From NCBI GenBank assembly GCA_965240325.2, contig OZ251230.1, positions 1,116,001 through 1,180,000 on the forward strand: a stretch of DNA of 64,000 nucleotides, written 5' to 3'. The position numbers were made by a program, and so were the translations under genes. The stretch's first letter is position 1; each line of letters begins with the position of its first letter. Under the pieces are notes generated by a model. The model did no database searches. It saw only the letters and a program-made list of their open reading frames with translations, and was not told where the DNA came from. This document shows positions 3,165 through 53,380 of the stretch, piece after piece. This DNA comes from Rebecca billardiae RCC1528. Lineage: Eukaryota; Protista; Haptophyta.

Positions 3165-4976
3165 TCAGGTGCGGAGCGCCTTTTGCTGCTTGCGCCACGC
3201 TTGCACCGACATGTCGCCGATGGGTGCCAGGGGGGGCGGGTTGGCGCGCACCCATGCCGCGCGACTGCCCTCGTCCTGCCACATGAACGAGGACCCACCG
3301 GCCGACGGCCCTTCGGGCGGGCCGTGGCCATACAGCTCCCAGAGGGCCAGGTCGCACTTGGCAAAGGCGCGCTCGATTCGCGCGAGGCCGTCGCCGCTGG
3401 CCGCGGACGCAGGCCAGCGCCCATCGGCCGAGCAGAGCAGAGCGCCGACGTAGCTCTGGCCGACGCGCGAGGCGGCCCCCGAGTAGTGCAGCACACACCA
3501 GCTCAGGTCGTCGGCCGCGTCGACCGTCGTCCAGCTCTCGAGCGAGACGACGCCGTTGTCGAGGGTGGTGAGCGTCCACGCGCCCGCTGACGTGCCGTCC
3601 TCGCCGCTCACGTCGCTCTCGACGGCGCGCGGCGAGCAGCGGTAGTGCCGCTTGCACCAAACCAGCCGGCCGTCGACTGTCTCCACGAGGAAGACCGGGT
3701 CGTACCACAGCGCCGATGCGGACGACTCGGACGGGTAGAAGAGTTGGTGCTGCGGCGCCGCAGCCGGCCAGCAGGAGGCCACGCAGCGCCATTGGACGGC
3801 ATCAGCCCGCGCGCGCGCGCGCACACAAAGCACGGCGGGTGTGAGGCTGCCTGAGCACGCGCGCGCGCGCACGCGCGCGTTGCCGCCGGCGCGGCCGCGC
3901 GCGCGCACCTGGCAGGGGAACGCGTCGTACGCTGGATTCGCGCCGCACACGATGCGCCAAGACCACGGCTTCCGCTGGCTCGCCTCCACTTGCGCCTCGA
4001 GATGGTCGAGGTGGCCGATCAGGATCTGTCGCGCCGTCCGATCCGTGAGCTTCTCGCCGCGCCACCGGCGCATGAGCGGCACGCGCGGCCGCTCGAGGAT
4101 TTTGGAGTCGCAGTTGAAGCAGTTGTTCTGCTGCAGGATGCACAGCGAGAACTCCTCGATCAGATCGGTCTCGTACGAGACGATCACGCGGTACGAGCCC
4201 ACCTGGTCGCGGGAGTCGACGTCGTTGAGCGCGTCGATCGCGGCCTTGCTCACCGGGTCGGAGAGCGCGGCGAAGATCTGCGGCCCGCAGCACTTGACCA
4301 TCGAGGCGAACTCGCGCGCGTTGCGCAGCGCGCCCTTCTCCCAGGTCGGGTTGATCGAGTGCCGCACCAGATCGAGCTCGAGCACGTACGCGTGCAGCAC
4401 GAAGAAGAGGGCGTACAAGTAGTCCTCCGAGGATGCGCGCGAGAGCAGCCCGCGCGCTTGCTCGGCGAGGCGCGCGGCGCGCGCGTATCGGCCCCAGGGG
4501 ATCAGCTTGCGCCGGGTCGCGGCGAGCGTGCCGTCAGCGGCGCGCGTAGTCCACGTGTCCACGAAGGAGAGGGCTGCGACGTCCTCCGCGCACGCGTGGC
4601 ACAGCAGAGCGCGCGGCGGCGCACGCTCGACGATGCTGGCCACGCCACGCGCATCCGTCGAGCCGAGAGCGAGCACCACGTCGGCAGAGGGCGCTCCTTC
4701 GAGCTGGCCGTCGAATGCCACCCGCGCGTCCAGGCGCGCGTCGAAGTTGGGCATGCGCTCGGCCAGGTGCTCGGCGACACTGCGCCATGACGGCATCGGC
4801 CGCGGCGACGTGCGCCCAAAGTCTGAGCGCACATCTTCGTCTGGTGGCACGACGAAGAGCACGTGCGCGTCGGATGCGACGGGGCGGCGAGCGACTGCCG
4901 TGGCCCTCGGCACGCGCGCGAGCAGCTGGGGCCGGTGCAGTGCGAGGGTCCACGCGATGATGGCGCCGCCGACCAT
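3165..4976 (-). CDS. VDR: Violaxanthin de-epoxidase-related protein (Cys-rich + lipocalin-like), 2 exons (4976-3909, 3749-3165), ~550 aa
   Basis: Motifs DQVGSYRVIVSYE, FSLCILQQNNC, GANPAYDAFPCQ|HQLFY, WYDPVFLVETVDG, LDNGVVSLESW, YSGAASRVGQSYVGA; GT-AG intron 3908-3750; hydrophobic N-terminus from ATG 4976. Confidence 0.85.
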   Translation of the reverse strand: MVGGAIIAWTLALHRPQLLARVPRATAVARRPVASDAHVLFVVPPDEDVRSDFGRTSPRPMPSWRSVAEHLAERMPNFDARLDARVAFDGQLEGAPSADVVLALGSTDARGVASIVERAPPRALLCHACAEDVAALSFVDTWTTRAADGTLAATRRKLIPWGRYARAARLAEQARGLLSRASSEDYLYALFFVLHAYVLELDLVRHSINPTWEKGALRNAREFASMVKCCGPQIFAALSDPVSKAAIDALNDVDSRDQVGSYRVIVSYETDLIEEFSLCILQQNNCFNCDSKILERPRVPLMRRWRGEKLTDRTARQILIGHLDHLEAQVEASQRKPWSWRIVCGANPAYDAFPCQVRARGRAGGNARVRARACSGSLTPAVLCVRARARADAVQWRCVASCWPAAAPQHQLFYPSESSASALWYDPVFLVETVDGRLVWCKRHYRCSPRAVESDVSGEDGTSAGAWTLTTLDNGVVSLESWTTVDAADDLSWCVLHYSGAASRVGQSYVGALLCSADGRWPASAASGDGLARIERAFAKCDLALWELYGHGPPEGPSAGGSSFMWQDEGSRAAWVRANPPPLAPIGDMSVQAWRKQQKALRT

Positions 4977-5860
4977 CTCCGCAGCGGGCGGCTGTCGGCC
5001 GGGTTCTTTGGTCCGTCGGTCCCGGACCGTAGAGCTACCGCCCCGGCCGGGCCCGCGAATCACGCATGGAGACTCGCCTTCGGCCTCGCCGTCGCGGGCG
5101 ATGACTTGGACGACGAGGAGGAGCCGCAGCAGCGGGTGAAGCGCTCCCTGGACGCCGCAGCACCGCATGCTGCCACCGGCCCGCCGCTGGATCGAGCGGC
5201 AAGTGCGCACGCCGCGGCCGCCGCGGGGGGGGGCACGGCAGGTTCGGACCGGTTGTCGGTTGAGGAAGTGGACTCATAGCTAGAACAGACTATGGACTGA
5301 TGGTCTGACAATGCCATGATCATGCTTATACCGGGGGTATGACGATGAAATGATGTGAGAAAGTCACTACTCTATAGCAGTCTATGTAGTCGTCAGACAT
5401 GAGACAAGCAGCTCTGAGCGACGACTGTTAACCAGCAGGGCCCGGCAGTGTAATTGAGTCGAGCGTTGAGTCAACTCAACAGGAAAGAAGGAATCAGCCC
5501 GATCAGGATCACATTCACATTCGGCGTGAATCGCGGCCGCACCCTGTCCCTGACGCAGCTATGCCGCATACTGAAATTACTGTAGTGATGATGAGCGAGT
5601 CGTATGCAGCTTGAGCTATGTCCGACGATGCTCATGCTGCCGTGACCGTGACAGACATTCAGTATTAATAATTAGACTTAGTGCAGCAGCGGGACGGGCG
5701 GCCGAGACTGAGTCTGAGACAGACTGAGAGGCGACGGAGTGCCTGTCACTGTCAGTGCCCACCTCACTCGAGCGGCCAGGCAGAGGCAGGCACGACTACT
5801 GTATTATCACATTCACTCAGCAGCAAGCTGACTCTCAGATGACATGCAGAATATCATTCA

Positions 5861-8329
5861 TCAGAGCGCAGCCTGAGCCATGCCGCGAATCGCGATGCGT
5901 GCTGCCGTACTGGGGAGCACTCGCGCATGGTCTTGCGCGCTCACGCCACCCACGTCCGCAAACAAGTATGCAGAGTCTGACGACGCCGTCGCTGACCATA
6001 GGCGCCCACTGCCACTGGCCGACGAGCCGTTCCGGCTCTGCTTGCGACGTGGGCGGCGCCCACCGTCGTCTGCGTGGCTGTCAGAGTCTGGCCCCTGCGA
6101 GGCCTGCTGCCGCCGCTGCCGCCGCGCGCCGCCGATAGGGGTGCGTGCCCGCGCCGCGCTGCCCGTCGGAGCCACCGTGGCAGCCTCGAGCCGTGGTGAA
6201 CTGCCGTGGCGAGCGGGCGTGCTGAAGAGGCCACGCTCCGCCGGCTGCTGCTCGCTGCGGTGCCTGGAGCGATCGCGCCCACTGCGGCGCCCGCGCGCAG
6301 CACGCGGGCTGTCGCTGCCGTCGCCTCCCGACGGACTGTGAGAGCCGTCGCCCGTCGCTCCCGGGACGGGAGTGGCGTGCGGCCAGGGGTGCGACGCGAT
6401 GCGCGCCTCGCGTCGCCGCGCCGCGGCGCCACGCGCGCCCGCCCACGCCCCGAACGCCGCGCGCAGCAGCCGAGCCCACGCCCGCAGCAGCAGGGCCACT
6501 GCCGAGCGCGAGCGCGCCACAAGCCGCAGCCACGCGTCGAAGTGCCGGGCACGGACGCGCGCCGCGTGCCGTCGCGCAGCCGCGGCCGTGGCGTGCGCGT
6601 GGGCGCGCGCCGTGGCCGGGCGAGAGACCAAGCGAGTGAGCGCTGCGCGCGCTCGGCGCCGGAGCCGACGCAACGCCGCTCGCAGCACAGGCACCGCGCA
6701 CGCACGTCGCCAGCGCGCGAGGGCGCGCGAGCGCCGCCGCGCCGCCAGCGCAGCTTGCGCCCGCAGCAGCCGCAGCGCAGCGATCGCCGCCCGCGCGAGT
6801 GAGCGCAGCCCGCGAGAGAGGCCTGCACGCGCGTGTGCGACCGCAGCGAGGCGCGAGGACGCCGGTCCAGCCGTGTGCGGCACGCTGGCGCGGCTGAGCG
6901 CGCGCGCGACCCGCCGCCGCCAGCGCCGCAGCGCGCCCGCGCGCCGGCCGCCGGCGCGCGCGGTGAGCGCGTGACGCGTGTCCCACGCTGCCGCGCGCCG
7001 CGCCCACTTCCGTGCGCCGCGGCGCAGGAGGAAGCGACGTCGCGCGAGGTGCGCCATGCGCGCGCTCGCGCTCGCGGCCGCTTCGCCGATCAGCCGATTG
7101 AGCGCTCGGCGCATGCGCGCGCGCGCGATTGTGCATGCGGCCGCCTCCGTGACAGCTGTCACGTCCGCGCGCGCCGCGGCCGCAGTTCGGCGCCAGGCAC
7201 GCAGGGGCCCGGCGGCCGTGTGCCGCAGCGCGGCTGCGCGCGAGGCCGCTGCGGCTTGCGCGGCGTGAGCCACGCGCATCTCCCCCGCGCCGGCGGCCTC
7301 CGCCCAGAGGAGCGCCGCCGCCGCGAACGCACCGCCGCGCGCCGAGCCCACGGCAGTTGAGATCACCAGCCAGGCGGTGCGCCGGCGCCGTGCGGCGCGG
7401 TGCGCACGCAAGCGCGAGAGCGCGCGATGCAGCGCGCTGCGCGTGCGCTGCGCGTCGGCGGCCACGTCCGCAGCCGCCGCCTCGTGCCGCAGCACGCTGC
7501 CGTGCGCACGCCTCCACGCGCGCCACCGCGCAGCCGCCCGAGCCCACGCGAGCGCGCGAGCGTGCCGCGCCGCGCGTGCCGCGCCGAGCCATGCGCGCGT
7601 GTGCCGGCGGAGCTTGGACTGCAGCCACAGGGAGCGCGCCGCCGTAGCGATCAGGGCGTCCCCCGCGCGGCACGCCTCCTCCTCCGCGGCCGTGCCCTCC
7701 GCCTCGAGCGCGGCTCGTCGCGCGCGCGCCTCCGCCTCCGCAGCGCTCTGACGCGCCGCGACGCGCGCTGGTGCGTGCGACTGCCTGCGCTGCAGCGCGC
7801 TCGTGCGAGCCAGGGCGGGCGAGGAGCGGGGCGTCGCGGCGGGCGGGGCCTTCTCAGGCCGTACGCGGGATGGCGACTCGCCGCCGAGCGAGAACCGCCG
7901 GCGCTGGTGCTCCGCCGACGCCCTGCCGACGTGCACGGTCTGCGTGCGCGCGGTGCTCGGCGCGAACGGACGGCTAGGCTCGCTGCCGAGCACGCCGCCG
8001 ATGCACGACCAGACAATCCGCGAGGGCACGGCGGCCACCATCTCCGCGTGTGAGCATGCCACTGCACGTGGCTTCGGCTCCGCCCGGCCGCTCACGGGCG
8101 GCAGCTCGCGCCAGGTGTCGCGGCTCCACTGCCGAAGCACAGCCGCATACAGCTGGCCGTCGTCGTGCCCACCGTCCTCACGGCGCGACGCATCGAGGGC
8201 GGCGAGCACGTCGCCCAGAGTTACGCGTTCTGGCTCACCGCCACGCTGTCTTACAGCGCGCGCGTACACGTCGGCCACCAGCGCCGACGTGTTTGAGTGG
8301 CGCAGCCAGTTCACCTCGGCTGTCGTCAT
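5861..8329 (-). CDS. Ala/Arg-rich helical protein with Sfi1-like Trp repeats (putative centrin-binding)
   Basis: Long ORF with recurring LxxW/FxxW motifs (LRAWRR, LRRWRR, LARWRR, HFDAWL, AFGAWA); first plausible ATG at 8329; 3' end and possible introns uncertain. Confidence 0.5.
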   Translation of the reverse strand: MTTAEVNWLRHSNTSALVADVYARAVRQRGGEPERVTLGDVLAALDASRREDGGHDDGQLYAAVLRQWSRDTWRELPPVSGRAEPKPRAVACSHAEMVAAVPSRIVWSCIGGVLGSEPSRPFAPSTARTQTVHVGRASAEHQRRRFSLGGESPSRVRPEKAPPAATPRSSPALARTSALQRRQSHAPARVAARQSAAEAEARARRAALEAEGTAAEEEACRAGDALIATAARSLWLQSKLRRHTRAWLGAARAARHARALAWARAAARWRAWRRAHGSVLRHEAAAADVAADAQRTRSALHRALSRLRAHRAARRRRTAWLVISTAVGSARGGAFAAAALLWAEAAGAGEMRVAHAAQAAAASRAAALRHTAAGPLRAWRRTAAAARADVTAVTEAAACTIARARMRRALNRLIGEAAASASARMAHLARRRFLLRRGARKWARRAAAWDTRHALTARAGGRRAGALRRWRRRVARALSRASVPHTAGPASSRLAAVAHARAGLSRGLRSLARAAIAALRLLRAQAALAARRRSRALARWRRACAVPVLRAALRRLRRRARAALTRLVSRPATARAHAHATAAAARRHAARVRARHFDAWLRLVARSRSAVALLLRAWARLLRAAFGAWAGARGAAARRREARIASHPWPHATPVPGATGDGSHSPSGGDGSDSPRAARGRRSGRDRSRHRSEQQPAERGLFSTPARHGSSPRLEAATVAPTGSAARARTPIGGARRQRRQQASQGPDSDSHADDGGRRPRRKQSRNGSSASGSGRLWSATASSDSAYLFADVGGVSAQDHARVLPSTAARIAIRGMAQAAL

Positions 8330-10236: not shown

Positions 10237-12200
10237 TCATCGGCCTGCAGCGTCGCGGGCCGGGACCCTCCTGGCCATCACCACAGGTATGGCCTGTGGT
10301 TGCTGCCGTCGTGCTGCCCCCGCCGCCATCGATGGTCGTCCTGGCACAGCGGTAGTGTTGATGCTTGCCGGTACTCCATGGTCGTAGTTGCCAGGGGCAG
10401 CCCGGATTGCATCACCTGCATTGCCACGCTGATGCCGCTCGTCCAGGGCAAGCGCACCATCCTCGACCACCCCGTCATCGACCGAGTAGATCGTGCCATC
10501 TGGCAAGCGCCAGCGGACGATGGTGACTGCGACGAGCGGCGGCGGTGCGGGCAGCTGCGGAGCGGCGTCCGAGACAGCCGCAATGCGGCCGGTGTGTTTG
10601 TGCCGTCGCTTTGCGGCGCGTGTGCTCTGGTCGCCGGTGCCATGCTCCAGCCTGCGCTTGGGGACAGCGAGCCGACTGAACACCATGCCAGCCAGCTTGT
10701 GCTCAGCGCACCGGCTGGCGCGCGCGTCGCCAGGCATGCCAAAGCAAGGCCGCGTGGTGCAGCCCGCGTGACCACACTTGGGGCTGCTCACGTCGACCAT
10801 GCCGGCCAGCTTGTGCGTAGCGCACCGGCTGGGGCGCGCGTCGCCAGGCATGCCAAAGCAAGGCCGCGTGGTGCAGCCCGCGTGACCACACTTGGGGCTC
10901 CTCACGTCGACCATGCCGGCCAGCTTGTGCGTAGCGCACCGGCTGGGGCGCGCGTCGCCAGGCATGCCAAAGCAAGGCCGCGTGGTGCAGCCCGCGTGAC
11001 CACACTTGAGGCTCCTCACGTCGACCATGCCGGCCAGCTTGTGCGTAGCGCACCGGCTGGCGCGCGCGTCGCCAGGCATGCCGAACGAAGGCTGACTGGT
11101 GCAGCCCGCGTGACCACACTTGGGGTTTCTCACGTCGACCATGCCGGCCAGCTTGTGCGTAGCGCACCGGCTGGCGCGCGCGTCGCCCGGGATGCCGAAT
11201 GAAGGCCCCTTGGTGCAGCCTGCGTGACCACAGTTGGGGCTCCTCACGCCGACCATGCCGGCCAGCTTGTGCGTAGCGCACCGGCTGGCGCGCGCGTCGC
11301 CAGGCATGCCAAAGCAAGGCCGCGTGGTGCAGCCCGCGTGACCACACTTGAGGCTCCTCACGTCGACCATGCCGGCCAGCTTGTGCGTAGCGCACCGGCT
11401 GGCGCGCGCGTCGCCAGGCATGCCGAACGAAGGCTGACTGGTGCAGCCCGCGTGACCACACTTGGGGTTTCTCACGTCGACCATGCCGGCCAGCTTGTGC
11501 ACAGCGCACCGGCTGGCGCGTGTGTTGCCCGGCATGCCGAACGAAGGCACCTTGTTGCAGCCCGCGTGATCACACTTGGGGCTCCTCACGCCGACCATGC
11601 CGGCCAGCTTGTGCGTAGCGCACCGGCTGGCGCGCGCGTCGCCAGGCATGCCGAACGAAGGCTGACTGGTGCAGCCCGCGTGATCACACGTGGGGTGCTT
11701 CACGTCGACCATGCCGGCCAGCTTGTGCGTAGCGCACCGGCTGGCGCGCGCGTCGCCCGGCATGCCGAAGTGAGGCCGCGTGGTGCAGCCCGCGTGACCA
11801 CACTTGCGGCTGCTCACGTCGACCATGCCGGCCAGCTTGTGCTCAGCGCACCGACTGGCGCGCGCGTCGCCCGGCATGCCGAATGAAGGCCCCTTGGTGC
11901 AGCCTGCGTGACCACACTTGGGCCTCCTCACGCCGACCATGCCGGCCAGCTTGTGCGTAGCGCACCGGCTGGCGCGCGCGTCGCCAGGCATGCCGAACGA
12001 AGGCTGACTGGTGCAGCCCGCGTGACCACACTTGGGGTTTCTCACGTCGACCATGCCGGCCAGGTTGTGTGCAGCGCACCGGCTGGCGCGCGCGTCGCCC
12101 GGTATGCCGAACGAAGGCTGCTTGGTGCAGCCCGCGTGATCACATGTGGGGTGCTTCACGTCGACCATGCCGGCCAGCTTGTGCGTAGCGCACCGGCTGG
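10237..12200 (-). CDS. EsV-1-7-type cysteine-rich repeat protein (13 x 38-aa CCCH repeats, C-terminal basic NLS-like segment); true start uncertain
   Basis: Repeat V-x4-C-x-HAGC-x3-P-x-FGMPGDARASRC-x2-HKLAGMVD; frame is open through all repeats; KRR...KRRHK follows the array. Confidence 0.8.
10678..12159 (-). repeat. Coding tandem repeat, 13 x 114 bp
   Basis: 1482 bp = 13 exact-length units, plus a partial unit extending to ~12200. Confidence 0.95.
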
Positions 12201-12294
12201 CGTTGTGCGTCGCCGAGCCAAGGGTGTCCAGACCTAGGGTCCCCAACTCGCACTGCGCAGCGCGGCAAGCTCGGCAGCTTGCCAGCTTCGCCGG

Positions 12295-13969
12295 CGGCTT
12301 GGGGAGCAAACCCTCAGGATCGGGCGAGCGAGGTGCGCCGCGACCCCCCCCCCCCGGCCCCGGCCGTCGCGGCGCACCCCTGCCTGCCTCGGCGAGTCCG
12401 TTGGACTTCGGCCCTCGCGTGGTTGTGGCCGCCGCTGCCCTGCGGCGCTGACGGCGGGAGGTACGCTGCTCGAAGCTGCCGCGCGGATGAGCGCGCAGCC
12501 TGACGAGGGCCAGGCGAGCGCCGCGCTGCCATCTCTGCCCCAGATCGACCTCCTCCTCGAAGACGGCGACCCTGGACAGTGGGACGCTGCGCTCGTCGTC
12601 ATCGGCTCGGCCGGCGGCCTCGACGTGTACGCGCTCGCGCTCACGGCGGACAACGAGGCCACACTGCCGAGCGCGTGGCATGCGCAGGCGCCTGACCGCC
12701 TACTCTTTGCCATCTTCGCGCCGCAGTGGCTCCCGCACAACTTCACCAGCCGCGTGTGCTTTGTGGACGGCCGGTTCCTGCAAGGCGTGCGCCTCGGCGC
12801 TGCTGAACTGACGGCGCCGACTCACTACCTGCTGCTCAAAACCCAGACGCACCGCAGGCAGCTGGCCGAGGCTCAGCGTGCGGCCAGGCATATGTCCGGT
12901 CGCCAGCATCTGTCGCAGGTGCCATGGATGACCGCCGACGCCGTGCTCACCGTCGTGCAGCACCTGCTCGCGCACGGCAAGATGGTCGGCCAAGCTGCGC
13001 CTGCGCTGCGCGCCGAGCGCGCCCGGAGCTCGCCGCGATCGCCGCAGCCTTGTAAGGCATGGGCGCGAGCTTCCCGGCCAAGGCGCATGAGCTCGAGCAG
13101 CGCGCGCAGGCGCGCGCAGCCGCCGCCTCGCTTTGGCCGGCGGCGGCGGCGCGTCGGTTGGGCACGCATGTCGCCCGAACCTGTAGCAAGGCTTGCAGCC
13201 AGTCGATCCTCACGCACGTCGGCACGAAGTGCACGCTCGCCGAAGCTGCAGGCCACGACGAGCCTCGCGCACAAGCGCCCGCCCCGTCGCCGTCGACGAC
13301 TGCCATCAGCTCCTGAGCGAACGCACGACCACGCTCGCCCGGTCGGCGGCCGCCTCTAACTCCGGTTGTCGTGCCCGGCGCCGCCCGGGCGGCCGCGGCG
13401 CACCGACCGGCGCCTCAGCTCAGGCTACCGCACGCACGCTCGCGATCGACGCCGCCTACTATATGATCGTAGCAGCATCTATAGGCTGTAATCTGCCCAC
13501 CTCGACGCGCCGACGTGACCGTAAGTGGGCGCGCACGCAACCCTACACGTGGCAGCTGTCGACGGCTGAGTTGCGACACTGCACGACCCTCAGTAGATCG
13601 CCCAGCGCCGGCGACTCGCCGCGCGCACAGGCGAGCGCGCTTGCAGCAGTTGCCCATGTATATGCCCCGACGTGCCAAGCTCGAGAGCGCCTCGAAACTC
13701 GCCCTGGATGGGCCACGCGCGCAGCCTCAAGGGCGCGCGGCCGCAGCCCGGGCTGGGCCCGGCGGAATGCAACAGGTCCTGCGCGGCGGAGAGAGGCGAG
13801 AGTGCGGGGCGAGAAGGGACGGGGATGATCCTCCATGTCTCCCGGTGCCATCCGCCCAGCGCGCGCGAGCGTGCGCGCCGCGAGGGCCGCGCATCAGCCT
13901 GCGCAGCGCGCGTGGTGCGTGCCAGATTGGTCGCCATCGCCCGATCCCGAGGGTTTGCTCCCCAAGCCG
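12295..13969. repeat. 33-bp inverted repeat pair (12295-12327 and 13937-13969)
   Basis: CGGCTTGGGGAGCAAACCCTC(A/G)GGATCGGGCGA, one mismatch between the arms. Confidence 0.85.
12487..13359 (+). pseudogene. Coding-like fragment of unknown family
   Basis: First ~170 codons have protein-like composition and GC3 bias, then degrade to shadow-like sequence (probable frameshift). Confidence 0.3.
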
Positions 13970-32119: not shown

Positions 32120-34747
32120 TCAGACATTATTGTCATCTGCTGGCTCTGGCATCGTTTCCACTCTGCTGCGATCGGCAGTATCGCCGCCCTCTCTTGTAGC
32201 CGCTTGGAGCCGCAGTGCGGCGGGCGCGACAGTGCTTCGCTCGCGATCGATGAATGCTTGGAGCGCCGCCACCGATCGCTCGCCGCCCATGTACTGCCGC
32301 GGCGGCACCGCCCAACCTGCCCCGGTAGGGTCGCCGCCCGCCCGGTCCGCGCGCGGGCCCTGGTCCGCGCCGCCCGGACTTGGCCGCTGCGCCGGGAAGA
32401 TGTACACGGCCGGGAACGTGTGCACCGTCACGCCCTCCGCCTCGTTCACGCTCATGTCCAGCTCCGCCACCACCAGCCCGGTGTCGCCCGCGGCGTCGTG
32501 CGTGTTGGCCAGCTCAGCCCACAGCGGCAGCAGCGCGCGCGAATGCGCGCACCACGGCGTGTGGAAGAGCACCGCAAGGTCGGTGTGCGCGTCGTGCGCG
32601 GCGCGCGCAAACGTGCGCCCCACGAGCTTCTTCAGCGGCGAGGCCGGACCGTCTGCCGCACCCGTCGGCTCTGGCTCGGGCTCGGAGCGCACTCGTGCGC
32701 GCAGCCGGCCCGAGCGCGCGGCGCGCACGTACCGCACGAGCTCGTCTGTGCTCGGCAGCCGCGCGGGCTCGGACAGGGCGGGTGGCGACCCCACGCGCGC
32801 GCCTCCGCCTTCGGGGCTCGCCGTCGCCTCGAGTGCCGCCGGCGTCGCGCCCAGCGCGCCGTGCTCGGCCAACGTGGGATTCGAGACGGGCTCGGCGCGA
32901 GTGCTGCCGTTGGCGCCGGCCGCGGCCGCGGCCGCGCTGCGCGCGCGCGTCGGTTCAAGCTCGGCCGCGGCCTTCACGGCGGTGGTGGCGTTGTTGCCCG
33001 CGCCGCTCGGCCGGTGGACGTACGCGTGGAACGCCTTGGTGCGGTTGGTGTCGAGCAGCACGACGGCGGGCAGCGAGCTCGCGTTGAGCGCGAGGAAGGT
33101 GAGGACTCCCTGTGTCCCCTCGGTGGTCTCGAGCAGCACAGCGGTGGCCTCGCCCTCCAGGGCAGCCGCTGCCTCAGGCAGCAGCTGCGAGCGAATTTGC
33201 GCGGTGGCGGCGGCGCGCTGCGCACGGCGCCGCGCCCTGGCGCTCGCGGCGGCCGCCGGGGGCGTGGCGGCGACACGCCCGTCGGACAGCACCTGCGCTG
33301 CCACCACGTCGTCGCCACCGCCGCCGCCGGCCGCCGCCGCTGGTTCCGCGACCGTTGGCTCGGCGGCGCCCTCATCGGCCTCCGCCTCGTCCGCGCTGTC
33401 GGCTGCCGCCGCGCTCTCCGGCTGGAGCGCGGGGAGCAGGGCGATCAGATGGAAGCGCGTCGAGTTGTCGCGCGGGTCGAAGAGCCAGCGCTGGCTGACG
33501 GGCGTGTACGGCGAGACCAGAGGCCTGCTCTTGAGGCGCACAAACTGACCGAGCCGCCGACCGCACTCGGATGGGGCGGGCCGCGCGCGGGCGTTGACAC
33601 TTGTGCCGCCGCCATCGCTCCTCCGCTCGTCCTCGGCGTCGTGCGCGCCGACGGAGGCGAGCAGCGAGGTGCAAGGCGCGGCGCGCGAGGCCACCTCCGC
33701 CTCCGCATCGCCGCCGCCCGCGCCGCCCGCCGCCCCCGCCGCCCACGCACGCAGCGAGCTGAAGGCCGCTGAGCCGTTCGGTGCGCCGTATCTCACGAGC
33801 AGCACGTCGGGTGCGCGCCTCTCCGCACGGCCCGTGCCGGGGTGGGTCGGGGCGTCGTGGGGCGCGAGGAGCTGGGCGCATGCGTGCTCGCACGACGCAT
33901 CATCCGCGCCCTCCCCACCCGAGGCCGCGCCCGCCTCGCCATCCACCGCGCCCGGCGCGTCGCGCGCGTCGCCGCCCTCTGCGGCCGCGCAGTCGACAAA
34001 GCGCGCGGGGATGTTGCGGTGCAGCCGCTCGTACGCCTCAGCCACCTCGCGCAGCGCGGAGACCAGCGCGCCGGGCGCGTCGCACCCGCTGCCGATCGCA
34101 GGCGCGTCCTCGACGCCTTCGCCGCGCGGCTCCGAGCGCAGCGCGCAGCCAACGACGGCCACGGAAGGGTGCGCCTTGCTCGCTGCTGCAGCGGCCGTGG
34201 CCAGCTCTGCGCGGAGTGCTGTGGCACTGCGCGCCTCGAGCAAGACGCCCTCCACACGCCGGCGCACCCACTGCTCGATGTCGTCCGCGCTCGCCAGCCC
34301 GCCCGTGTACTTCTCGCGCACGCCTCCCGCGTACCACACCAGCTTGGGGTACTTTGCAACCTCGTGGGCGGCGCTGAGCACCTTGTGCTGCGTCGCGTCG
34401 ACCGTGGCAAAGGCCAGATCGGGGGAGGACGGAGCGCCGCCGGGCCGGGTCGTCGCATCGTCGTCGCCGCCCTCGACGGCGGCGTGTGAGCTCGCGAGCC
34501 GTCTCGCAGCCTCGCGGAAGTGGGGCAGCACGCGCCGCGAGTGCCCGCACCACGGCGCAAAGAAGATGACGAGCGCGTGCTCGCGCGCAGCCACGCGGCT
34601 CGCAAATTCCGCTTCGTCGTCCACTTCGATCGTTGCATGCTGCGCGCCCGCGGAGTCGGTGGCCGGCACGTCAGCGGCGGCCGCACAGGCGATGAAGAGG
34701 AGGGAGATCAGAATAGCCGGCAACGCGGTGGAGCGGGCGGCCGCCAT
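32120..34747 (-). CDS. Protein disulfide-isomerase-like protein with two CXXS thioredoxin domains, ~875 aa
   Basis: Signal peptide after ATG 34747; FFAPWCGHS, VDAT, KYPKL; FHTPWCAHS, LDMSVNE, HTFPAV; long Ala/Gly-rich inserts. Confidence 0.85.
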   Translation of the reverse strand: MAAARSTALPAILISLLFIACAAAADVPATDSAGAQHATIEVDDEAEFASRVAAREHALVIFFAPWCGHSRRVLPHFREAARRLASSHAAVEGGDDDATTRPGGAPSSPDLAFATVDATQHKVLSAAHEVAKYPKLVWYAGGVREKYTGGLASADDIEQWVRRRVEGVLLEARSATALRAELATAAAAASKAHPSVAVVGCALRSEPRGEGVEDAPAIGSGCDAPGALVSALREVAEAYERLHRNIPARFVDCAAAEGGDARDAPGAVDGEAGAASGGEGADDASCEHACAQLLAPHDAPTHPGTGRAERRAPDVLLVRYGAPNGSAAFSSLRAWAAGAAGGAGGGDAEAEVASRAAPCTSLLASVGAHDAEDERRSDGGGTSVNARARPAPSECGRRLGQFVRLKSRPLVSPYTPVSQRWLFDPRDNSTRFHLIALLPALQPESAAAADSADEAEADEGAAEPTVAEPAAAAGGGGGDDVVAAQVLSDGRVAATPPAAAASARARRRAQRAAATAQIRSQLLPEAAAALEGEATAVLLETTEGTQGVLTFLALNASSLPAVVLLDTNRTKAFHAYVHRPSGAGNNATTAVKAAAELEPTRARSAAAAAAGANGSTRAEPVSNPTLAEHGALGATPAALEATASPEGGGARVGSPPALSEPARLPSTDELVRYVRAARSGRLRARVRSEPEPEPTGAADGPASPLKKLVGRTFARAAHDAHTDLAVLFHTPWCAHSRALLPLWAELANTHDAAGDTGLVVAELDMSVNEAEGVTVHTFPAVYIFPAQRPSPGGADQGPRADRAGGDPTGAGWAVPPRQYMGGERSVAALQAFIDRERSTVAPAALRLQAATREGGDTADRSRVETMPEPADDNNV

Positions 34748-34871
34748 CGTTGCTGGGCGGGCAAAAGGCCCTCTCCGGAGAAGACGCTGCTGCGGCGCCT
34801 TTTCCGGCTGAAACGGCCAGGCTGAAAACGGATTCAACCCCACCAGCGAGAAGCGTCCAGCACCCGACACG

Positions 34872-35882
34872 ATGATCGGCGCACACGCCTCCGGCCTCAT
34901 GGGCCTCGAGCAGGCCTCCGAGCAGCGAGCGCCGCCCCCACTTGCGCGCAACCCCATCCTCGAGCCTGACGAGCAGCACAAGTCCATGCGACGCGCCTTC
35001 GCGCCCATTCAGAGCGGCCACGCCGACCTGCTGGACGGGCACCACAAGGCGCGCGGGACCAAGGGCGTCGAGGGCGGGGCCGGCCTCGGGTCGGTGCGGC
35101 ACGGCGAGCTGCTCTTCCCCGAGGCACCGCCTCGCCGGGGCCACGCAAGCCACGGCGAGGGTGCCGCCGGGCTGCAGTCCACCGAGCCGTTCGAGACAAC
35201 GCGTGGCAAGGCGCGGCCCCCGTCGGCCTCGGCCGAAGCCCGCAACCCGGTGCTGCTCGAAGGGTATGCCGAGGGACAGCTCGTCGACTACACGCGCTTC
35301 ACGCCGCGTGAGACATCTGGCTCGCAGATGGCGAGCGCTCTCGGCCCCGGCCTCCTCCCCGTCCACGACGAGCCGGTGCGCGCGCTCCGGCGGCCGGGCA
35401 CGGCCAATGCCCACGGCGTGGCCACCGATGCGCTGAGCGGCTTCGCCGGGGCCTCGTCGAGCCAGCTGCACCGGCGTGAGTTCGAGGAGAACACCCGCGC
35501 GCATCCGCACCCGACCACCGAGGCCGCCCTCGCCGCGCTCCAAGGCGACAACATGTCCAAGCTACTCAACTACCAATTCTCAAACGGGATTTCAGACTCG
35601 CAGCCGTTTGGCGGCGCGCGCGCCGCGGAGCAGGCGGAGTACCTCGAGCAGCTCAAGGCGCTGCATGACGAGCGCGCGGCGAACGAAAAGCTGTACGAGC
35701 AGATCAAGGCGCGTGTGTCCGCCCCGAGTCTCGCCGCAGACGGGCCGCAGCCATCGCAGCCATCGGCGCCGGCGCCAGGCGGCGACGCAGCGGCAAGCGG
35801 CCCTGAGCCGGCGACCGAGCCGCCCGCAGCCCCGGGCCCGCAGGATGCTGCCGCGCAGCCCCTCCCTGCGGGCTCGTCGTAG
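34872..35882 (+). CDS. Hypothetical protein, 336 aa, short coiled coil and Pro/Ala tail
   Basis: ATG-initiated ORF with GC3 bias and balanced composition, divergent from the PDI gene. Confidence 0.7.
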   Translation: MIGAHASGLMGLEQASEQRAPPPLARNPILEPDEQHKSMRRAFAPIQSGHADLLDGHHKARGTKGVEGGAGLGSVRHGELLFPEAPPRRGHASHGEGAAGLQSTEPFETTRGKARPPSASAEARNPVLLEGYAEGQLVDYTRFTPRETSGSQMASALGPGLLPVHDEPVRALRRPGTANAHGVATDALSGFAGASSSQLHRREFEENTRAHPHPTTEAALAALQGDNMSKLLNYQFSNGISDSQPFGGARAAEQAEYLEQLKALHDERAANEKLYEQIKARVSAPSLAADGPQPSQPSAPAPGGDAAASGPEPATEPPAAPGPQDAAAQPLPAGSS

Positions 35883-40498: not shown

Positions 40499-41224
40499 TA
40501 TCCCCGATACTAATTTAACCTACTGTCTGTGGCTGTTACCTGGCCCGGAGTCCGAGAGGCGAGACCAAGTCGGGCAAGTGCCAGCAGTGGGCGGGCCCGC
40601 GGGCCGAGAGTCAGAGTCGGGGACTCCCGGCGGTAGGCTACGGGCGGCCGGTCCAGGCTGCTGACACTCAGCCCATGTATGTATGGGTGTCAGGGTGTGG
40701 AAGCGAGTTATACTTCAGTACCCAGGTGTGTTTGCTATAGAAGCCTTTCTATGGGAAGATTTAGATTGAGGGGGTGGCGAATACAGCCTAGCTATAGATA
40801 GGGTAGTTGGCACCTAACCATCATGCCCCAACCATGATGATACCGTAGTATACTACATGACACTGTGAGCCATTATGAGCATGGCTGCCCGCTCTCGCCC
40901 TCGCCCTCGGGCTCGGCCCGAGCTGACGTCTGCTGACGAGGGGCCGGCCGGGTTACTCATACTAGTCTGCTAAATACTCAGACTTCTGCGGGCGGGTACC
41001 ACGCCCGGGCTGATGAGCGACACAGGTCCATACTGCCATCATCTAGATCGACCTGCCAGATGGCATCGGCATACCTGAATCTAGTGAATCGTCCGTGATT
41101 TCAGAATTCAGTGCAGCCCGTGCGTCATGCGTGACGCGACGGTCGTGCCGTCCCCCGGCCCCGTCACTCGGCCATCAGGACCCAGGGCCGGGGCCTGCCG
41201 ATGGGCGAGCCAGCATAGAGAGAC

Positions 41225-42106
41225 TTACCGCTGCTCGGCGCTCGGCTTGGCCGCTCGCGCGAGTGCGGTGCATACGGCCACGAGAGACTCTGCCTGCAGC
41301 CCCGCGCGCCCGACCACGAAGCCGTCCACATCCGGGAGGGCGGCGTACTCGTGCGCGTTCTGCGCAGACACCGAGCCTGTGTATACGAGGCGGCACGCTG
41401 CTGCGGCCGCGTCGCCCGCGTGCTGCCGCACGCACTGGCGCATGTGCGCGTGCACTCTTTGCGCCTCCTCGGGACTGCAGGGCTGCGCGCCCTCGCCAAT
41501 CGCCCAGACGGGCTCGTATGCGATCACCACGCGCGACCACGCCGTCGCAGGCACGCTCGCGGCCGCCGCCGCGAGCTGCCTCGCGATGACGGCGAGCGCG
41601 TCGCCGGCCTCGCGCTGCGCGCGCGTCTCGCCGACCGTGAGGTTGACGTTGAGCCCGTCCACACCGATGACCTGAGCCACCTTCTCTCCGATGAGCGCAT
41701 CTGTCTCGCCGAAGGTGTTCCGCCTGTCCGAGTGGCCCAAAACAACCCAAGAGCACCCAACCGTCCGAAGGAGCGCGGGTGTGAGCACGCCGGTGCCCTT
41801 GCTCGCGGGTGGGACAGCCTCGAGCACGTTCTGCGCACCGACGCTGATTGTGCCGTCGAGCTTGGAGCGTACGCGGTCGAGGAGCACCGCGGGCGGGCAG
41901 ACGCACAGCTCGATGCTCGCTGCGAGGCCCGACGCGCCCCACGCCTTGTTGATGTCCGCCACCAGCTTCTCAGCCTCGTCTGCGGCCTCGATGCCGCACT
42001 TCCAGTTCGCGCCAACGAAGAGACGCCGCTGGGGCTGCGACGAAGCGGCTGCGTCCGTGCTGCCCTGCACACTCGCGGATGAAGGTGTGGACGCGCCGCA
42101 CCCCAT
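41225..42106 (-). CDS. TPI: Triosephosphate isomerase-like protein with MGCGAS N-terminal extension, 293 aa
   Basis: FVGANWK, GAQN, VVLGHSDRR, VGET, VIAYEPVWAIG, YTGSV, DVDGFVVG. Confidence 0.92.
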   Translation of the reverse strand: MGCGASTPSSASVQGSTDAAASSQPQRRLFVGANWKCGIEAADEAEKLVADINKAWGASGLAASIELCVCPPAVLLDRVRSKLDGTISVGAQNVLEAVPPASKGTGVLTPALLRTVGCSWVVLGHSDRRNTFGETDALIGEKVAQVIGVDGLNVNLTVGETRAQREAGDALAVIARQLAAAAASVPATAWSRVVIAYEPVWAIGEGAQPCSPEEAQRVHAHMRQCVRQHAGDAAAAACRLVYTGSVSAQNAHEYAALPDVDGFVVGRAGLQAESLVAVCTALARAAKPSAEQR

Positions 42107-42195
42107 GGCGGCAAACGACGATCGGAGGGTGGTGATTGGCTGAAACAGAACGACCGGAAGAAGTACGTTCGCGACTGTATACTTGTAACGGCGTA

Positions 42196-43036
42196 CAGTT
42201 TACTAAGAATAAGAGACGCACACAGTTAAATTCCCCTTTATAACGGGCTCCGGGTGATCAGACTGGCGGCCGAAGCCTCCAGCCCTACCCTGGCCAGCCC
42301 CCAACCAACCACCACCCTCACCCAACCTCAAACCACTGACCGATACACCAAGTGCCTTGACACCACTCCGCTGTGGACAGCCCGCCTCCAGAGGGGGCGG
42401 GGGTATGCCATTGCTGACAGCATACAAGCCCAACACTGTGGGGTGGTCCCAGGTACCAGCAGTGCACTGCCTTGCAATTCGAGATCATCGAGTTTGAGCC
42501 GCGAGTCGGCAGACTGGGCACCCCTTAGGGTGCCCCAGTGTGGGCAGAGGGCCAGCCACTAGCCGATCCCTGCGCGGGGGAGGGGACGGAGGGGGCTGTC
42601 AGCGAGCCCAGTAGCTGGGCCGGGCCCGGGGTCTGGGCCACTGGTCCTGGCAGTGAGGCGCCTGTATTTCACTCGTGCTGCTATATGGAGGCAGATGGTG
42701 TCATGTCAGACATGTGTGCGATATCGGGCATCAAGTCAGGGCGTGGGCCGCTGTAGGAGGCAAGCAGAGTGGTGGCGATGGCTAATACGCCTGGGGAGGA
42801 GTCGTTTGCGCGCCTCTTTCTGCTGCTCTTTGCAGGGGGTTGCATACTTCGCTGTGCAGGCTGAGCCTGCCTGCCAGTTGGTGTTAGGACAGGCACATTT
42901 GCCTGGCGGGGTGGGCAGTGTCGTTTGGGCGGGGGGCTGTCTTGCTGAGCTTGACTAGGAGGAGGCAGCCTGCGCCTGGGGGCTGCCAGTGTCTTGGCAG
43001 AGCCAGCAGGTGGCTACACAGCTCAGGCAGGCGAGA
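42196..43036 (+). mobile_element. Tc1/mariner-type MITE terminal repeat, split by an insertion
   Basis: TA|CAGTTTACTAAGAATAAGAGACGCACACAG (42196-42225) resumes as CTCAGGCAGGCGAGA (43022-43036); intact versions at 47881-47925 and ~51625-51670. Confidence 0.8.
42226..43015 (-). mobile_element. 790-bp insertion with 6-bp TSD, probably a 5'-truncated, decayed non-LTR retrotransposon (RTE-like 3' end)
   Basis: ACACAG duplicated (42220-42225, 43016-43021); no TIR; visibly CpG-poor; minus-strand remnants GHPKGCP (GRPxGRP after CpG decay) and PLWRRAVHSG resemble RTE ORF ends. Confidence 0.55.
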
Positions 43037-43124
43037 TTGACGCCCGCAACAAGTAATCACTTGCTCGGCGACAGAGTCGGCGCTGCGGCGCAGCTTGCTG
43101 GCGCCGGAGAACGGCTCGATCAGG

Positions 43125-44945
43125 ATGGACGTCACGGCGGCGACCTTTGCGATCCTCGCGGCCGCGGCGGGGGCGCACGCCGGGCATGCCGGGCAGTGGG
43201 CTGACGCCGACCGCGTGCACACCATGCCCTCGTACGGGCCGCCCCCGACGCCCACGTTCTCGGGCTTCCTCAACGCCGACGCGGCCGAGCCGGGCACGCG
43301 TCTCCACTACCATTTCGCCGTGAGCAGCCGCGCGCGCGCGGGCGAGCTGGTGGACAAGGCGGGCGAGACGATCCCGGTGGTGCTCTGGCTGAACGGCGGC
43401 CCTGGCAGCTCGTCGTACCTCGGCCTGTTCCAGGAGCTCGGCCCCCTCCTGATCAACGGCACCGGCGGGCTCTTTGAGAACCCGTACGCGTGGACGACGC
43501 GCGCGCACCTGCTCGTGCTCGAGTCGCCGGCGGGCGTGGGGTACTCGTACTGCAAGGCGCAGCTCGCGGGCGGCGGGTGCGTCAACACGGACAAGTCCAC
43601 CGCCGCCGCCGCGCGCGCCGCCGTCGCCGACTTCTACACGGCCAAGTTCCCCGAGCTCCGACACGCGCCTCTCTACCTGACGGGTGAGTCGTACGCTGGC
43701 GTGTACGTGCCCACGCTGGCGCTGGAGCTGCTCGAGCACGCGCACGGCGTGGTGCCGCTCGCGGGGCTGGCGGTGGGCGACCCGTGCACCGACAACAAGC
43801 TGCAGCACGACTCGATGGACATGGTCTGGTACGCGCACAAGTACGGGCTGCTGCCAGACGCTGACTTCCAAACCCTCTGGCACAGCTGCGAGTACCGCCA
43901 GCCGAGCGCGCTGGCCGCCGGCCGGTGGCACGCGGCGGCGGACGGCTCGGGGCTCCGCGCGGCGCGCGCGCCGTCGTCGCCGCCCTCGGCGGCGCCGCCC
44001 TCGGCGGCGTGCACCCTCGCTCGGCGCAAGTTCCTCGCCACCACCTCGCGCGGCTTCAGCCAGACGTGGGCGCGCGCGTACCTGAACGATCTGACGCTCT
44101 ACGGCCCGTCCGCCACGGCCACGTTCGACGTGCCGCGCTCGCTCGACGCTCTGACCGCAGCGTACCTCTCGCGCGCGGACGTGCGCGCCGCGCTGCACGT
44201 CGAGCGCGCGCCCGCCGCCGCGTGGCCCGGCCCCGCCGCCAACTGGAGCTACACCTCCGACTACGCCGCGTGCAACGAGGCGTCCCGGCCGGGCGTTCCC
44301 TCGATGATTGCCTTCCACCGCAAGCTCGCGCCGTCGCTCAAGCGCACGCTCGTGTTCAACGGCGACACGGACCCGTGCGTCTCGTACGAGGGCACGCGCG
44401 AGGCGGTGCGCCAGGTCGGCTTCCCCGAGGTCAAGGGCGGCTCGTACCGCCCGTGGTTCTTCAACGCGAGCGCCGCGGCGGAGTCGGTGCTGCGCGCCAA
44501 GCCGCTGCTCTTTGGGCCGTCGCTCGCGCTGCAGCCGGGCGGCGCGCAGATGGGCGGCTCGGTCGTGGACTACGCGCACGGGCTGTCGTTTCTCACCGTG
44601 CACGGCTCCGGGCACATGTGTGCGCTGCGCCGCTTGCTCCGCGCCCCGAGCGCCGTGCGTGGCGCTCGCTCGCGCTGCGGGACGCCGCCAGCGAACACCA
44701 CCGGTGGCCCTCGACGCACCGAGCACGCGCCCGCCCCGCCCTCCCCGCCCGCGTGCCGCAGGGTCCCGCAGTTCCGCCCGCGCGCGGCACTGCACCTGCT
44801 GGACAAGCTGCTGTCCGGCGAGCCGTTCTCGCCGCCCCTGCCGTCCGACGACGAGCTGCGCGCCATCTCCGAGGACGACTTCGACGCAGCGGTCGACAGC
44901 TGGACGGACGCCGCGAGGGCGGCGCCGTACGTCACGCCGTGCTGA
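43125..44945 (+). CDS. Serine carboxypeptidase (peptidase S10), 2 exons (43125-44617, 44762-44945), ~558 aa
   Basis: Signal peptide; WLNGGPGSSS, LESPAGVGYSY, GESYAG, FNGDTD, TVHGSGHM|VPQFRP across a GT-AG intron. Confidence 0.93.
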   Translation: MDVTAATFAILAAAAGAHAGHAGQWADADRVHTMPSYGPPPTPTFSGFLNADAAEPGTRLHYHFAVSSRARAGELVDKAGETIPVVLWLNGGPGSSSYLGLFQELGPLLINGTGGLFENPYAWTTRAHLLVLESPAGVGYSYCKAQLAGGGCVNTDKSTAAAARAAVADFYTAKFPELRHAPLYLTGESYAGVYVPTLALELLEHAHGVVPLAGLAVGDPCTDNKLQHDSMDMVWYAHKYGLLPDADFQTLWHSCEYRQPSALAAGRWHAAADGSGLRAARAPSSPPSAAPPSAACTLARRKFLATTSRGFSQTWARAYLNDLTLYGPSATATFDVPRSLDALTAAYLSRADVRAALHVERAPAAAWPGPAANWSYTSDYAACNEASRPGVPSMIAFHRKLAPSLKRTLVFNGDTDPCVSYEGTREAVRQVGFPEVKGGSYRPWFFNASAAAESVLRAKPLLFGPSLALQPGGAQMGGSVVDYAHGLSFLTVHGSGHMCALRRLLRAPSAVRGARSRCGTPPANTTGGPRRTEHAPAPPSPPACRRVPQFRPRAALHLLDKLLSGEPFSPPLPSDDELRAISEDDFDAAVDSWTDAARAAPYVTPC

Positions 44946-53242: not shown

Positions 53243-53380
53243 TGTGGGCAATTTCGTATTCCGGGCACACCTCTTCCGTACTCGTATTTTACACGATTAA
53301 GTAGAGTAGACTGTACCGGGTTGCAGACGGACGGTCTCTGCTGGAGACCGTCCGGCTGGCTGCCAGCTCAATCAAGGACG

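Follow-up and report, generated by a model that had tools for sequence, protein, structure and literature searches.

Thirteen EsV-1-7 units in a gene of the haptophyte Rebecca billardiae, and the possibility that EsV-1-7 arrays read DNA

We analysed a 64,000-nucleotide stretch of Rebecca billardiae RCC1528 DNA (GenBank assembly GCA_965240325.2, contig OZ251230.1, positions 1,116,001 to 1,180,000 of the forward strand; hereafter the window), the minus strand of which carries a gene for 13 tandem EsV-1-7 units (Table 1). The gene is an array-only member of a known family, ordinary though unusually long. The same few positions of the repeat unit vary most in array after array of this family, and in many relatives the array stands N-terminal to a nuclease-like domain. 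DNA binding with some specificity is the reading best supported, the domain fusions being what it rests on, and we give it an even chance. That the arrays constitute a true modular code for reading DNA is a more tentative proposal, possible but on balance doubtful.

The array, its units and their predicted structure

Tandem Repeats Finder delimited a single tandem array at 10682-12214 with a period of 114 nt (13.4 copies, 90% matches, no indels). In translation the array occupies residues 180-673 of the minus-strand open reading frame (ORF), where 13 of 13 units read exactly C-x4-C-x16-C-x2-H, and a degenerate DNA pattern for the first knuckle, C-x-H-x-G-C, matched 13 times against 0.42 expected, always inside the array gene. 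The Pfam model EsV_1_7_cys (PF19114) scored 606.5 bits (cut-off 25; E=3.1e-187, 14 stretches), and all the sequence criteria that we tested place the gene in the EsV-1-7 family. A preliminary description of this DNA, made from its letters alone, had proposed 13 repeats of 38 residues on a nearly invariant CCCH scaffold and had named the Pfam EsV-1-7 model as the check to run; the repeats and the family assignment both held, and the interval it had given, 10678-12159, is the same array as ours (10663-12144) with the phase shifted by five residues. The closest database protein is no more than 63% identical, and the 13 units carry a net charge of +44 (isoelectric point 9.6). Matches of the arrays to other Pfam families (Inv-AAD, Gallidermin, IL8, Imm12, CoV_NSP13_ZBD and Zf_WRKY19), in which individual stretches gave no match or a partial one, were set aside because they were read as score accumulating over Cys-rich repeats.

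Within the array, the highest per-position entropies fell at unit positions 36, 9, 8, 25, 37, 11, 38, 33 and 35. The units differ chiefly on either side of the knuckle (positions 35-38 of one unit, followed by 8, 9 and 11 of the next) and at position 25. The variants listed in the preliminary description were all present: KH, RN, RR, SS or RS at positions 35-36; KQ-S, SQ-S, KG-S, TR-H, TR-C or KV-S at positions 8, 9 and 11; and T, A, E or V at position 25.

AlphaFold2 with family alignments gave a predicted local distance difference test score (pLDDT) of 87.9 and a predicted template modelling score (pTM) of 0.62 for one unit with its linkers, and a pLDDT of 80.5 and a pTM of 0.45 for four units, values consistent with flexibly connected, well-defined units. 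By prediction, each unit forms a small domain of its own, with strands at positions 12-13 and 22 (a short beta-hairpin) and 32-33, the Cys1-x4-Cys6 knuckle, and a helical turn at positions 24-26 where Cys23-x2-His26 is found. In a Foldseek search against BFVD, a library of predicted viral structures, the model matched the predicted structures of EsV-1-7 itself (Q8QNQ2, E=1.3e-15) and of EsV-1-115 (E=4e-10). The BFVD matches included many giant-virus proteins, four of them named 'Endonuclease' (from Faunusvirus, cedratvirus and pithoviruses) and one named 'DNA primase'.

Variable positions and domain fusions across the family

The concentration of variation at a few residues, which had been claimed for this array, proved to be general to the family. 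Entropy within each array was determined for the relatives whose units are in exact 38-residue register (38 residues being the commonest spacing in relatives), i.e. for 27 arrays with at least five such units. Mean entropy was highest at positions 9, 11, 35 and 36, which lay above the other non-ligand positions in all 27. Since this set of positions came partly from the same data, we used a hold-out set of 43 arrays taken from 50%-identity cluster representatives; positions 35, 9, 36 and 11 were again the top four and exceeded the rest in 43 of 43 arrays, and the set named in the preliminary description (8, 9, 11, 25, 35 and 36) exceeded the other non-ligand positions in 42 of the 43.

These positions are enriched in particular residues: Q makes up 30% and R 26% of position 9 (backgrounds 3% and 5%), and S, N and H together make up 83% of position 36. 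The enriched types, Q, R, N, H and S, are common base contacts. Tested against within-protein shuffles, position 36 covaried with position 9 of the unit that follows (z=5.6) but not with position 9 in the same unit (z=-0.5). This suggests a working module that lies around the Cys1-x4-Cys6 knuckle and crosses the boundary between Pfam units; the two covarying positions are only 11 residues apart, and linkage through duplication could contribute to this signal. The 665 units contained 321 distinct triplets at positions 8, 9 and 11 and 129 pairs at positions 35 and 36, and the limited residue alphabet once proposed for the array was therefore not borne out. A variant unit with another ligand spacing, C-x-C ... 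C-C-x2-C, occurs in Effrenium voratum P0035 and P0332 and in P0113 (682-kb ENA contig); this unit, e.g. 'CNCGRARPCFGMPEDARASCCAKCKLEGMVDI', is otherwise very like those of Rebecca billardiae (50-54% identity).

The family comprises 5,979 cluster representatives at E<=0.001. We examined 246 of the best-scoring relatives, picked by score and length (120 and a hold-out of 126) and including giant-virus proteins. A strict C-terminal motif, RPD...ExDExQH, was present in 92 of the 120 and in 89 of the 126, i.e. in ~74% of the 246. The conserved domain that contains it reads RPD...ExDExQH...CxCE...R...NPDxY and follows a zinc-ribbon-like linker, CxxC...CxxC; in an alignment of 48 sequences the residues R, P, D, E, D, E, Q, H, R, N and P were invariant. 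The domain repeatedly gave sub-threshold matches to PD-(D/E)xK families: Hjc in seven members (best E=0.0015, profile positions 24-88), DUF2726 (3e-4) and HSDR_N_2 (0.012). It may represent an undescribed PD-(D/E)xK-like family found in giant viruses. Searches for a name in NCBIfam, PHROGs and PADLOC, by PDB profile search and by tblastn against phages yielded weak matches only (Vsr 0.11, methyl-directed restriction endonuclease 0.0056, intron/homing endonuclease 0.002), none of which was adopted. The domain may also resemble the 'EVDGxxH' motifs of the DUF559/Vsr type. One relative, P0027, ends in a different tail, 'FHGDFWHG', which may be Vsr-like, given a weak match to a Vsr model (E=0.11) and its JGI name.

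Two of the fused relatives can be placed in a genomic context. P0018 is a free-standing gene on a 309-kb contig, which the adjoining D5-type primase-helicase identifies as that of a giant virus, and P0260, the closest fused relative (61% identity), lies on a contig of 66% GC, next to the gene for a ribonucleotide reductase small subunit. A transposase of Ectocarpus is reported to carry an N-terminal EsV-1-7 domain (PMC12477816). The Rebecca billardiae array gene does not belong to the fusion subfamily: the C-terminal RPD...ExDExQH...NPD was not found in it, no nuclease-like domain was present in any frame, and a six-frame hmmsearch of the whole window with a profile of 114 relatives' tails matched the Cys-rich array only. 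IMG/VR held no close viral relative of the gene.

Relatives from named eukaryotes (Botryococcus, Coccomyxa, Effrenium, Nannochloropsis, Sphacelaria and Pylaiella) were all without the strict nuclease motif and most have low-complexity tails, and in several array-only relatives (P0360, P0044, P0046, P0003, P0094 and P0099) a basic patch occurs soon after the array. P0360 (63% identity) has four units, then NPKRQRRQ, then a low-complexity tail rich in Pro, Met and Gly; it lies at 763-1716 of a 2.1-kb contig with host-like GC content at third codon positions (GC3). This contig comes from run ERR14847148, which also holds the exact triosephosphate isomerase (TIM) protein of the window, so that an EsV-1-7 paralogue, or more than one, is almost certainly present in this organism. 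The Rebecca billardiae protein fits this array-only algal form, in that its units are followed by a basic patch and then by an Ala/Pro/Gly-rich tail.

Growth of the array, the gene model and its setting

Comparison of the units at the nucleotide level revealed very small differences, with 3 nt separating units 8 and 11, 1 nt separating units 11 and 12, and at most 3 nt separating any two of units 2, 5, 7 and 10. Synonymous markers are linked to unit type: the TR-C units have TTT at codon 12, and the KG-S units have both GCA at codon 4 and TCA at codon 11. Recent tandem duplications of blocks of one or two units enlarged the array; units 10-11, for instance, arose from units 7-8. The nucleotide differences thus confirm the recurrence, noted in the preliminary description, of units 2, 7 and 10 and of 7-8 as 10-11. 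Reassortment of the variants by recombination was not supported as such: tandem duplication of such blocks is sufficient to explain their shuffled order and nothing more elaborate is required.

We counted the minimal codon changes among units 1-12, which gave 30 nonsynonymous and 10 synonymous events (ratio of nonsynonymous to synonymous rates, ω, ~0.95). The nine most variable codons, a set picked after the data were seen, accounted for 23 of the 30 nonsynonymous and 4 of the 10 synonymous events (ω ~1.6, P=0.26 versus neutrality), and the 29 scaffold codons for 7 and 6, respectively (ω ~0.38). The clustering of nonsynonymous events in the nine codons was significant (simulation P=0.006), and the pooled pairwise ω by the NG86 method was 1.55 for the variable codons versus 0.35 for the scaffold. 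Constraint thus acts on the scaffold and is at least relaxed at the variable sites; these values fall short of demonstrating diversifying selection.

The mechanical minus-strand ORF spans 10237-12681 (814 codons). We propose a shorter coding sequence (Table 1) because Met172 (12166-12168) is the sole in-frame ATG between 12681 and the array, because the closest of the relatives from named organisms, P0035 of Effrenium voratum (54% identity), likewise begins at a linker Met ('MVDIKHPRC'), because genes nearby look intron-free, and because the codons upstream look non-coding. Met172 lies within the linker motif GMVDV of a unit remnant at the 5' array edge, which we defined by the extent reported by Tandem Repeats Finder and by local alignment to units 2 and 12; translation from this codon is most likely, although the start is inferred. 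The upstream extension of the ORF overlaps an ATG-started ORF on the plus strand, 12487-13359, and contains 12 consecutive G on the minus strand (12344-12355), ~180 nt upstream of the proposed start codon. The plus-strand ORF diverges from the EsV-1-7 gene; its first ~150 codons are coding-like in composition and non-repetitive, and it had no Pfam match and no exact protein record.

The basic stretch KRR...KRRHK, which the preliminary description had taken for a nuclear localisation signal (NLS), is indeed present directly after the array. As an NLS it is a pattern only, with a spacer of 13 residues where that of a classical bipartite signal has 10-12. The tail that follows had no match in Pfam or NCBIfam, and a homology search with unit 13 and the tail also gave none. 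GC3 is 0.79-0.90 in the array, compared with 0.75-0.95 in host genes, and drops from 0.77 to 0.51 along the tail, so that the coding status of the tail is uncertain.

Table 1. Features of the array gene and of its neighbours in the window
Feature	Position	Strand	Remarks
Proposed coding sequence	10237..12168	-	643 residues (Met172 to stop): 13 units, basic patch and tail; inferred start
13 complete 38-residue EsV-1-7 units	10663..12144	-	C-x4-C-x16-C-x2-H; all 52 metal ligands intact
Unit 7	11347..11460	-	all 114 nt the same as in unit 10 (11005-11118)
Remnant of a 14th unit, 5' array edge	12145..12214	-	unit nt 45-114 only; 1-nt insertion; Cys1 and Cys6 missing
Upstream in-frame ORF extension (first 171 codons), probably not coding	12169..12681	-	GC content at second codon positions up to 0.90; G12 run
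Basic bipartite-NLS-like patch, KRR-x13-KRRHK	10597..10659	-	KRRLEHGTGDQSTRAAKRRHK; residues 675-695, directly after the array
C-terminal tail rich in Ala, Pro and Gly	10240..10596	-	no recognisable domain
VDE-lipocalin-domain ORF	3165-5210	-	E=1.9e-6
Thioredoxin-domain ORF	32120-35008	-	E=1.6e-22
TIM gene	41225-42106, within 40768-42218	-	two Logan contigs match
S10 serine carboxypeptidase ORF	43095-44945	+	E=2.9e-70; match continuous
Two tandem paralogous genes	53321-55084 and 56396-58009	+	10-11 Sel1 repeats each, then a C-terminal MYND zinc finger

The array gene lies among cellular genes (Table 1) in an algal nuclear genome that is rich in GC and apparently poor in introns. GC content ranges from 57 to 80% across the window. 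The continuous S10 domain match makes the carboxypeptidase gene look intron-free. The exact TIM protein was found on two Logan contigs only (runs ERR14847151 and ERR14847148), both of which are 100% colinear with the window over 1.45 kb and have starts and ends that agree within 2 nt; they look like an unspliced 1.45-kb transcript of a TIM gene with no intron. The best named relatives of this TIM are from Pavlovales haptophytes, at only 58-60% identity. The highest GC content of the window, 80%, occurs at 6001-8000, where there is a mechanical 835-codon ORF without a Pfam match. No Rfam families or tRNAs were found in the 64-kb window.

Competing readings and the case for DNA recognition

The favoured reading is that the array would act as a modular, sequence-reading DNA-binding domain, in which each unit would add a few base contacts via its variable positions, rich in Q, R, S, N, H and K; a C2H2 finger array would be a likelier model for this mode of contact than a one-residue TALE code. 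The main reason to favour DNA binding is that an array on the N-terminal side of an enzyme that cuts or moves DNA is most simply taken to be its targeting part. The 13-unit protein, being nuclease-free, may then serve as a nuclear DNA-binding regulator, a role proposed because it combines the lack of a nuclease with an NLS-like patch and a low-complexity tail, as in other algal members. The nucleic-acid reader suggested in the preliminary description has thus gained indirect support, from the nuclease-like domain fused to ~74% of the best relatives and from the charge of the array, whereas the TALE-like code that went with it has not.

Comparison with known systems places the gene most closely with EsV-1-7 of Ectocarpus siliculosus virus 1, with Ectocarpus IMMEDIATE UPRIGHT (IMM) and with the brown-algal family, with which it shares the motif, the ligand spacing and the 38-residue period. 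These proteins are tandem arrays without another Pfam domain, as is the case here, if the unique N-terminal domain of IMM is left aside. The differences are the number of units (13, versus 4-11 in the retrieved relatives without the RPD nuclease motif) and the host, which unlike that of the brown-algal family is a GC-rich alga with haptophyte relatives of its TIM. The array-nuclease fusions P0018 and P0260 have the same type of array (up to 61% identity) with the same variable positions, but the Rebecca billardiae gene ends in a basic patch and a low-complexity tail in place of their nuclease-like domain. With the C2H2 arrays of PRDM9 and the KRAB-ZNF proteins the gene shares tandem units that are here predicted to bind zinc, a scaffold that is near-identical down to many synonymous sites, differences that fall at a small number of fixed positions in each unit, and expansion through duplication of units. 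In these respects the behaviour of the array resembles that of a PRDM9- or KZFP-type finger array more closely than that of a TALE. Membership of the C2H2 class itself, whose beta-beta-alpha units read C-x2-4-C-x12-H-x3-5-H, was rejected on the x4/x16/x2 CCCH spacing, the 38-residue unit, the different predicted fold, and the lack of a zf-C2H2 Pfam match and of a significant PDB fold match. TALE repeats likewise form long near-identical arrays with few variable positions that are followed by nuclear-localisation-like motifs, but they have a period of 33-35 residues rather than 38 and consist of helical hairpins rather than the beta-rich, ligand-bearing units predicted here; there is no relation in sequence or fold, and at least four variable positions that straddle the unit boundary, with no small alphabet, take the place of the di-residue at 12/13. 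Tandem CCCH RNA-binding fingers (C-x8-C-x5-C-x3-H) were also rejected, given the different spacing and the lack of any such Pfam match.

A number of observations weigh against sequence-specific DNA recognition by the array. There are no binding data for any EsV-1-7 family member in the literature searched, which still treats the ligand as unresolved, as the preliminary description had said. A sequence profile search of the PDB found no related solved structure, and Foldseek against the PDB gave no significant match (best E=1.7 for the four-unit model and 4.2 for the one-unit model), the weak matches being to zinc fingers of the nsp13-ZBD, LIM, GATA and PHD kinds. All of the nuclease assignments are under the Pfam cut-offs, the alignment shows no conserved Lys where the canonical (D/E)xK would have it, and the ~74% share of fusions comes from relatives selected by score and length and may not hold for the whole family. 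The residue alphabet is large, positions 9 and 11 are invariant among the units of the paralogue P0360, the ω of the variable codons is not significantly above 1, and four of the ten synonymous events also fall in those codons. As for the gene itself, exact-protein look-ups for three gene models returned no protein or transcript record, the tail is uncertain as coding sequence, and the spacer of the NLS-like patch is longer than the classical one.

Some of these observations would be explained if the array were a zinc-stabilised scaffold that binds protein or RNA and not DNA, its variable residues tuning partner recognition as in LIM, PHD and CCCH RNA-binding fingers. The only structural likenesses, all of them weak, are to protein-binding fingers of the treble-clef type (nsp13 ZBD, LIM, PHD and FYVE) as well as to GATA, CCCH ligand sets are common in RNA-binding fingers, the high positive charge fits RNA equally to DNA, and the literature searched contains no DNA-binding data for the family. 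We nevertheless regard such a scaffold as unlikely, as the repeated nuclease-like fusions and the Ectocarpus transposase fusion put the array where a DNA-targeting module is expected, the ligand spacing is unlike C-x8-C-x5-C-x3-H with no zf-CCCH Pfam match, and the E-values of the fold search are far from significant. We also think it improbable, to a similar degree, that the protein is a non-specific polycation on DNA or chromatin, whose variability reflects tolerant surface loops combined with concerted evolution elsewhere, and hence no code. The ω of the variable codons, which is compatible with neutrality, the many distinct triplets, and the near 1-bit entropy of many positions within the arrays of other proteins all speak for this, and with units 7/10 and 11/12 being recent copies much of the scaffold identity is simply youth. 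Against it stand the top rank of the same four positions in 70 of 70 other arrays, from 50%-identity cluster representatives, their enrichment in Q, R, N, H and S, and the covariation of position 36 with position 9 of the next unit; targeting is the simplest reason for finding differing arrays on one conserved nuclease-like domain.

The truncated, frameshifted unit at the 5' edge of the array, the lack of a canonical start upstream of the array, the decay of GC3 along the tail, the lack of a nuclease domain and the lack of any transcript or protein record found could together indicate that the locus is a decaying, unexpressed relic of a viral or mobile array-nuclease gene that has lost its nuclease, and the closest fused relative, P0260, does lie on a dense, virus-like contig. 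This we consider very unlikely: a single open frame of 643 codons contains all 13 units with their 52 ligands intact, the scaffold ω is ~0.35-0.38, the codon composition is host-like, the neighbours are cellular, IMG/VR contains no close viral relative, and an array followed by a basic patch and a low-complexity tail is the usual form in named algae, with P0360 present in the data of the same organism.

The gene family defined by the EsV-1-7 domain is among the largest in brown algae and includes the developmental regulator IMM; the domain has been considered a possible new zinc finger. In the EsV-1-7 literature searched we found neither a report of recurrent repeat-variable positions, such as the four described here, nor a link between EsV-1-7 and nucleases, such as the common nuclease-like fusion; the two observations turn the possible new zinc finger into a concrete DNA-reader hypothesis. 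We suggest tentatively, as a proposal that could well prove wrong, that EsV-1-7 arrays may be a further natural class of modular, repeat-encoded DNA-recognition domain, with specificity set by positions 35 and 36 of one unit together with 8, 9 and 11 of the next, by which giant-virus nucleases and at least one transposase would choose their targets, and which algae would have domesticated without the nuclease as nuclear regulators, e.g. IMM and the 13-unit protein. If true, this would account for the roles of EsV-1-7 proteins in algal development and in giant-virus genomes, and would add a new type of modular DNA-reading domain.

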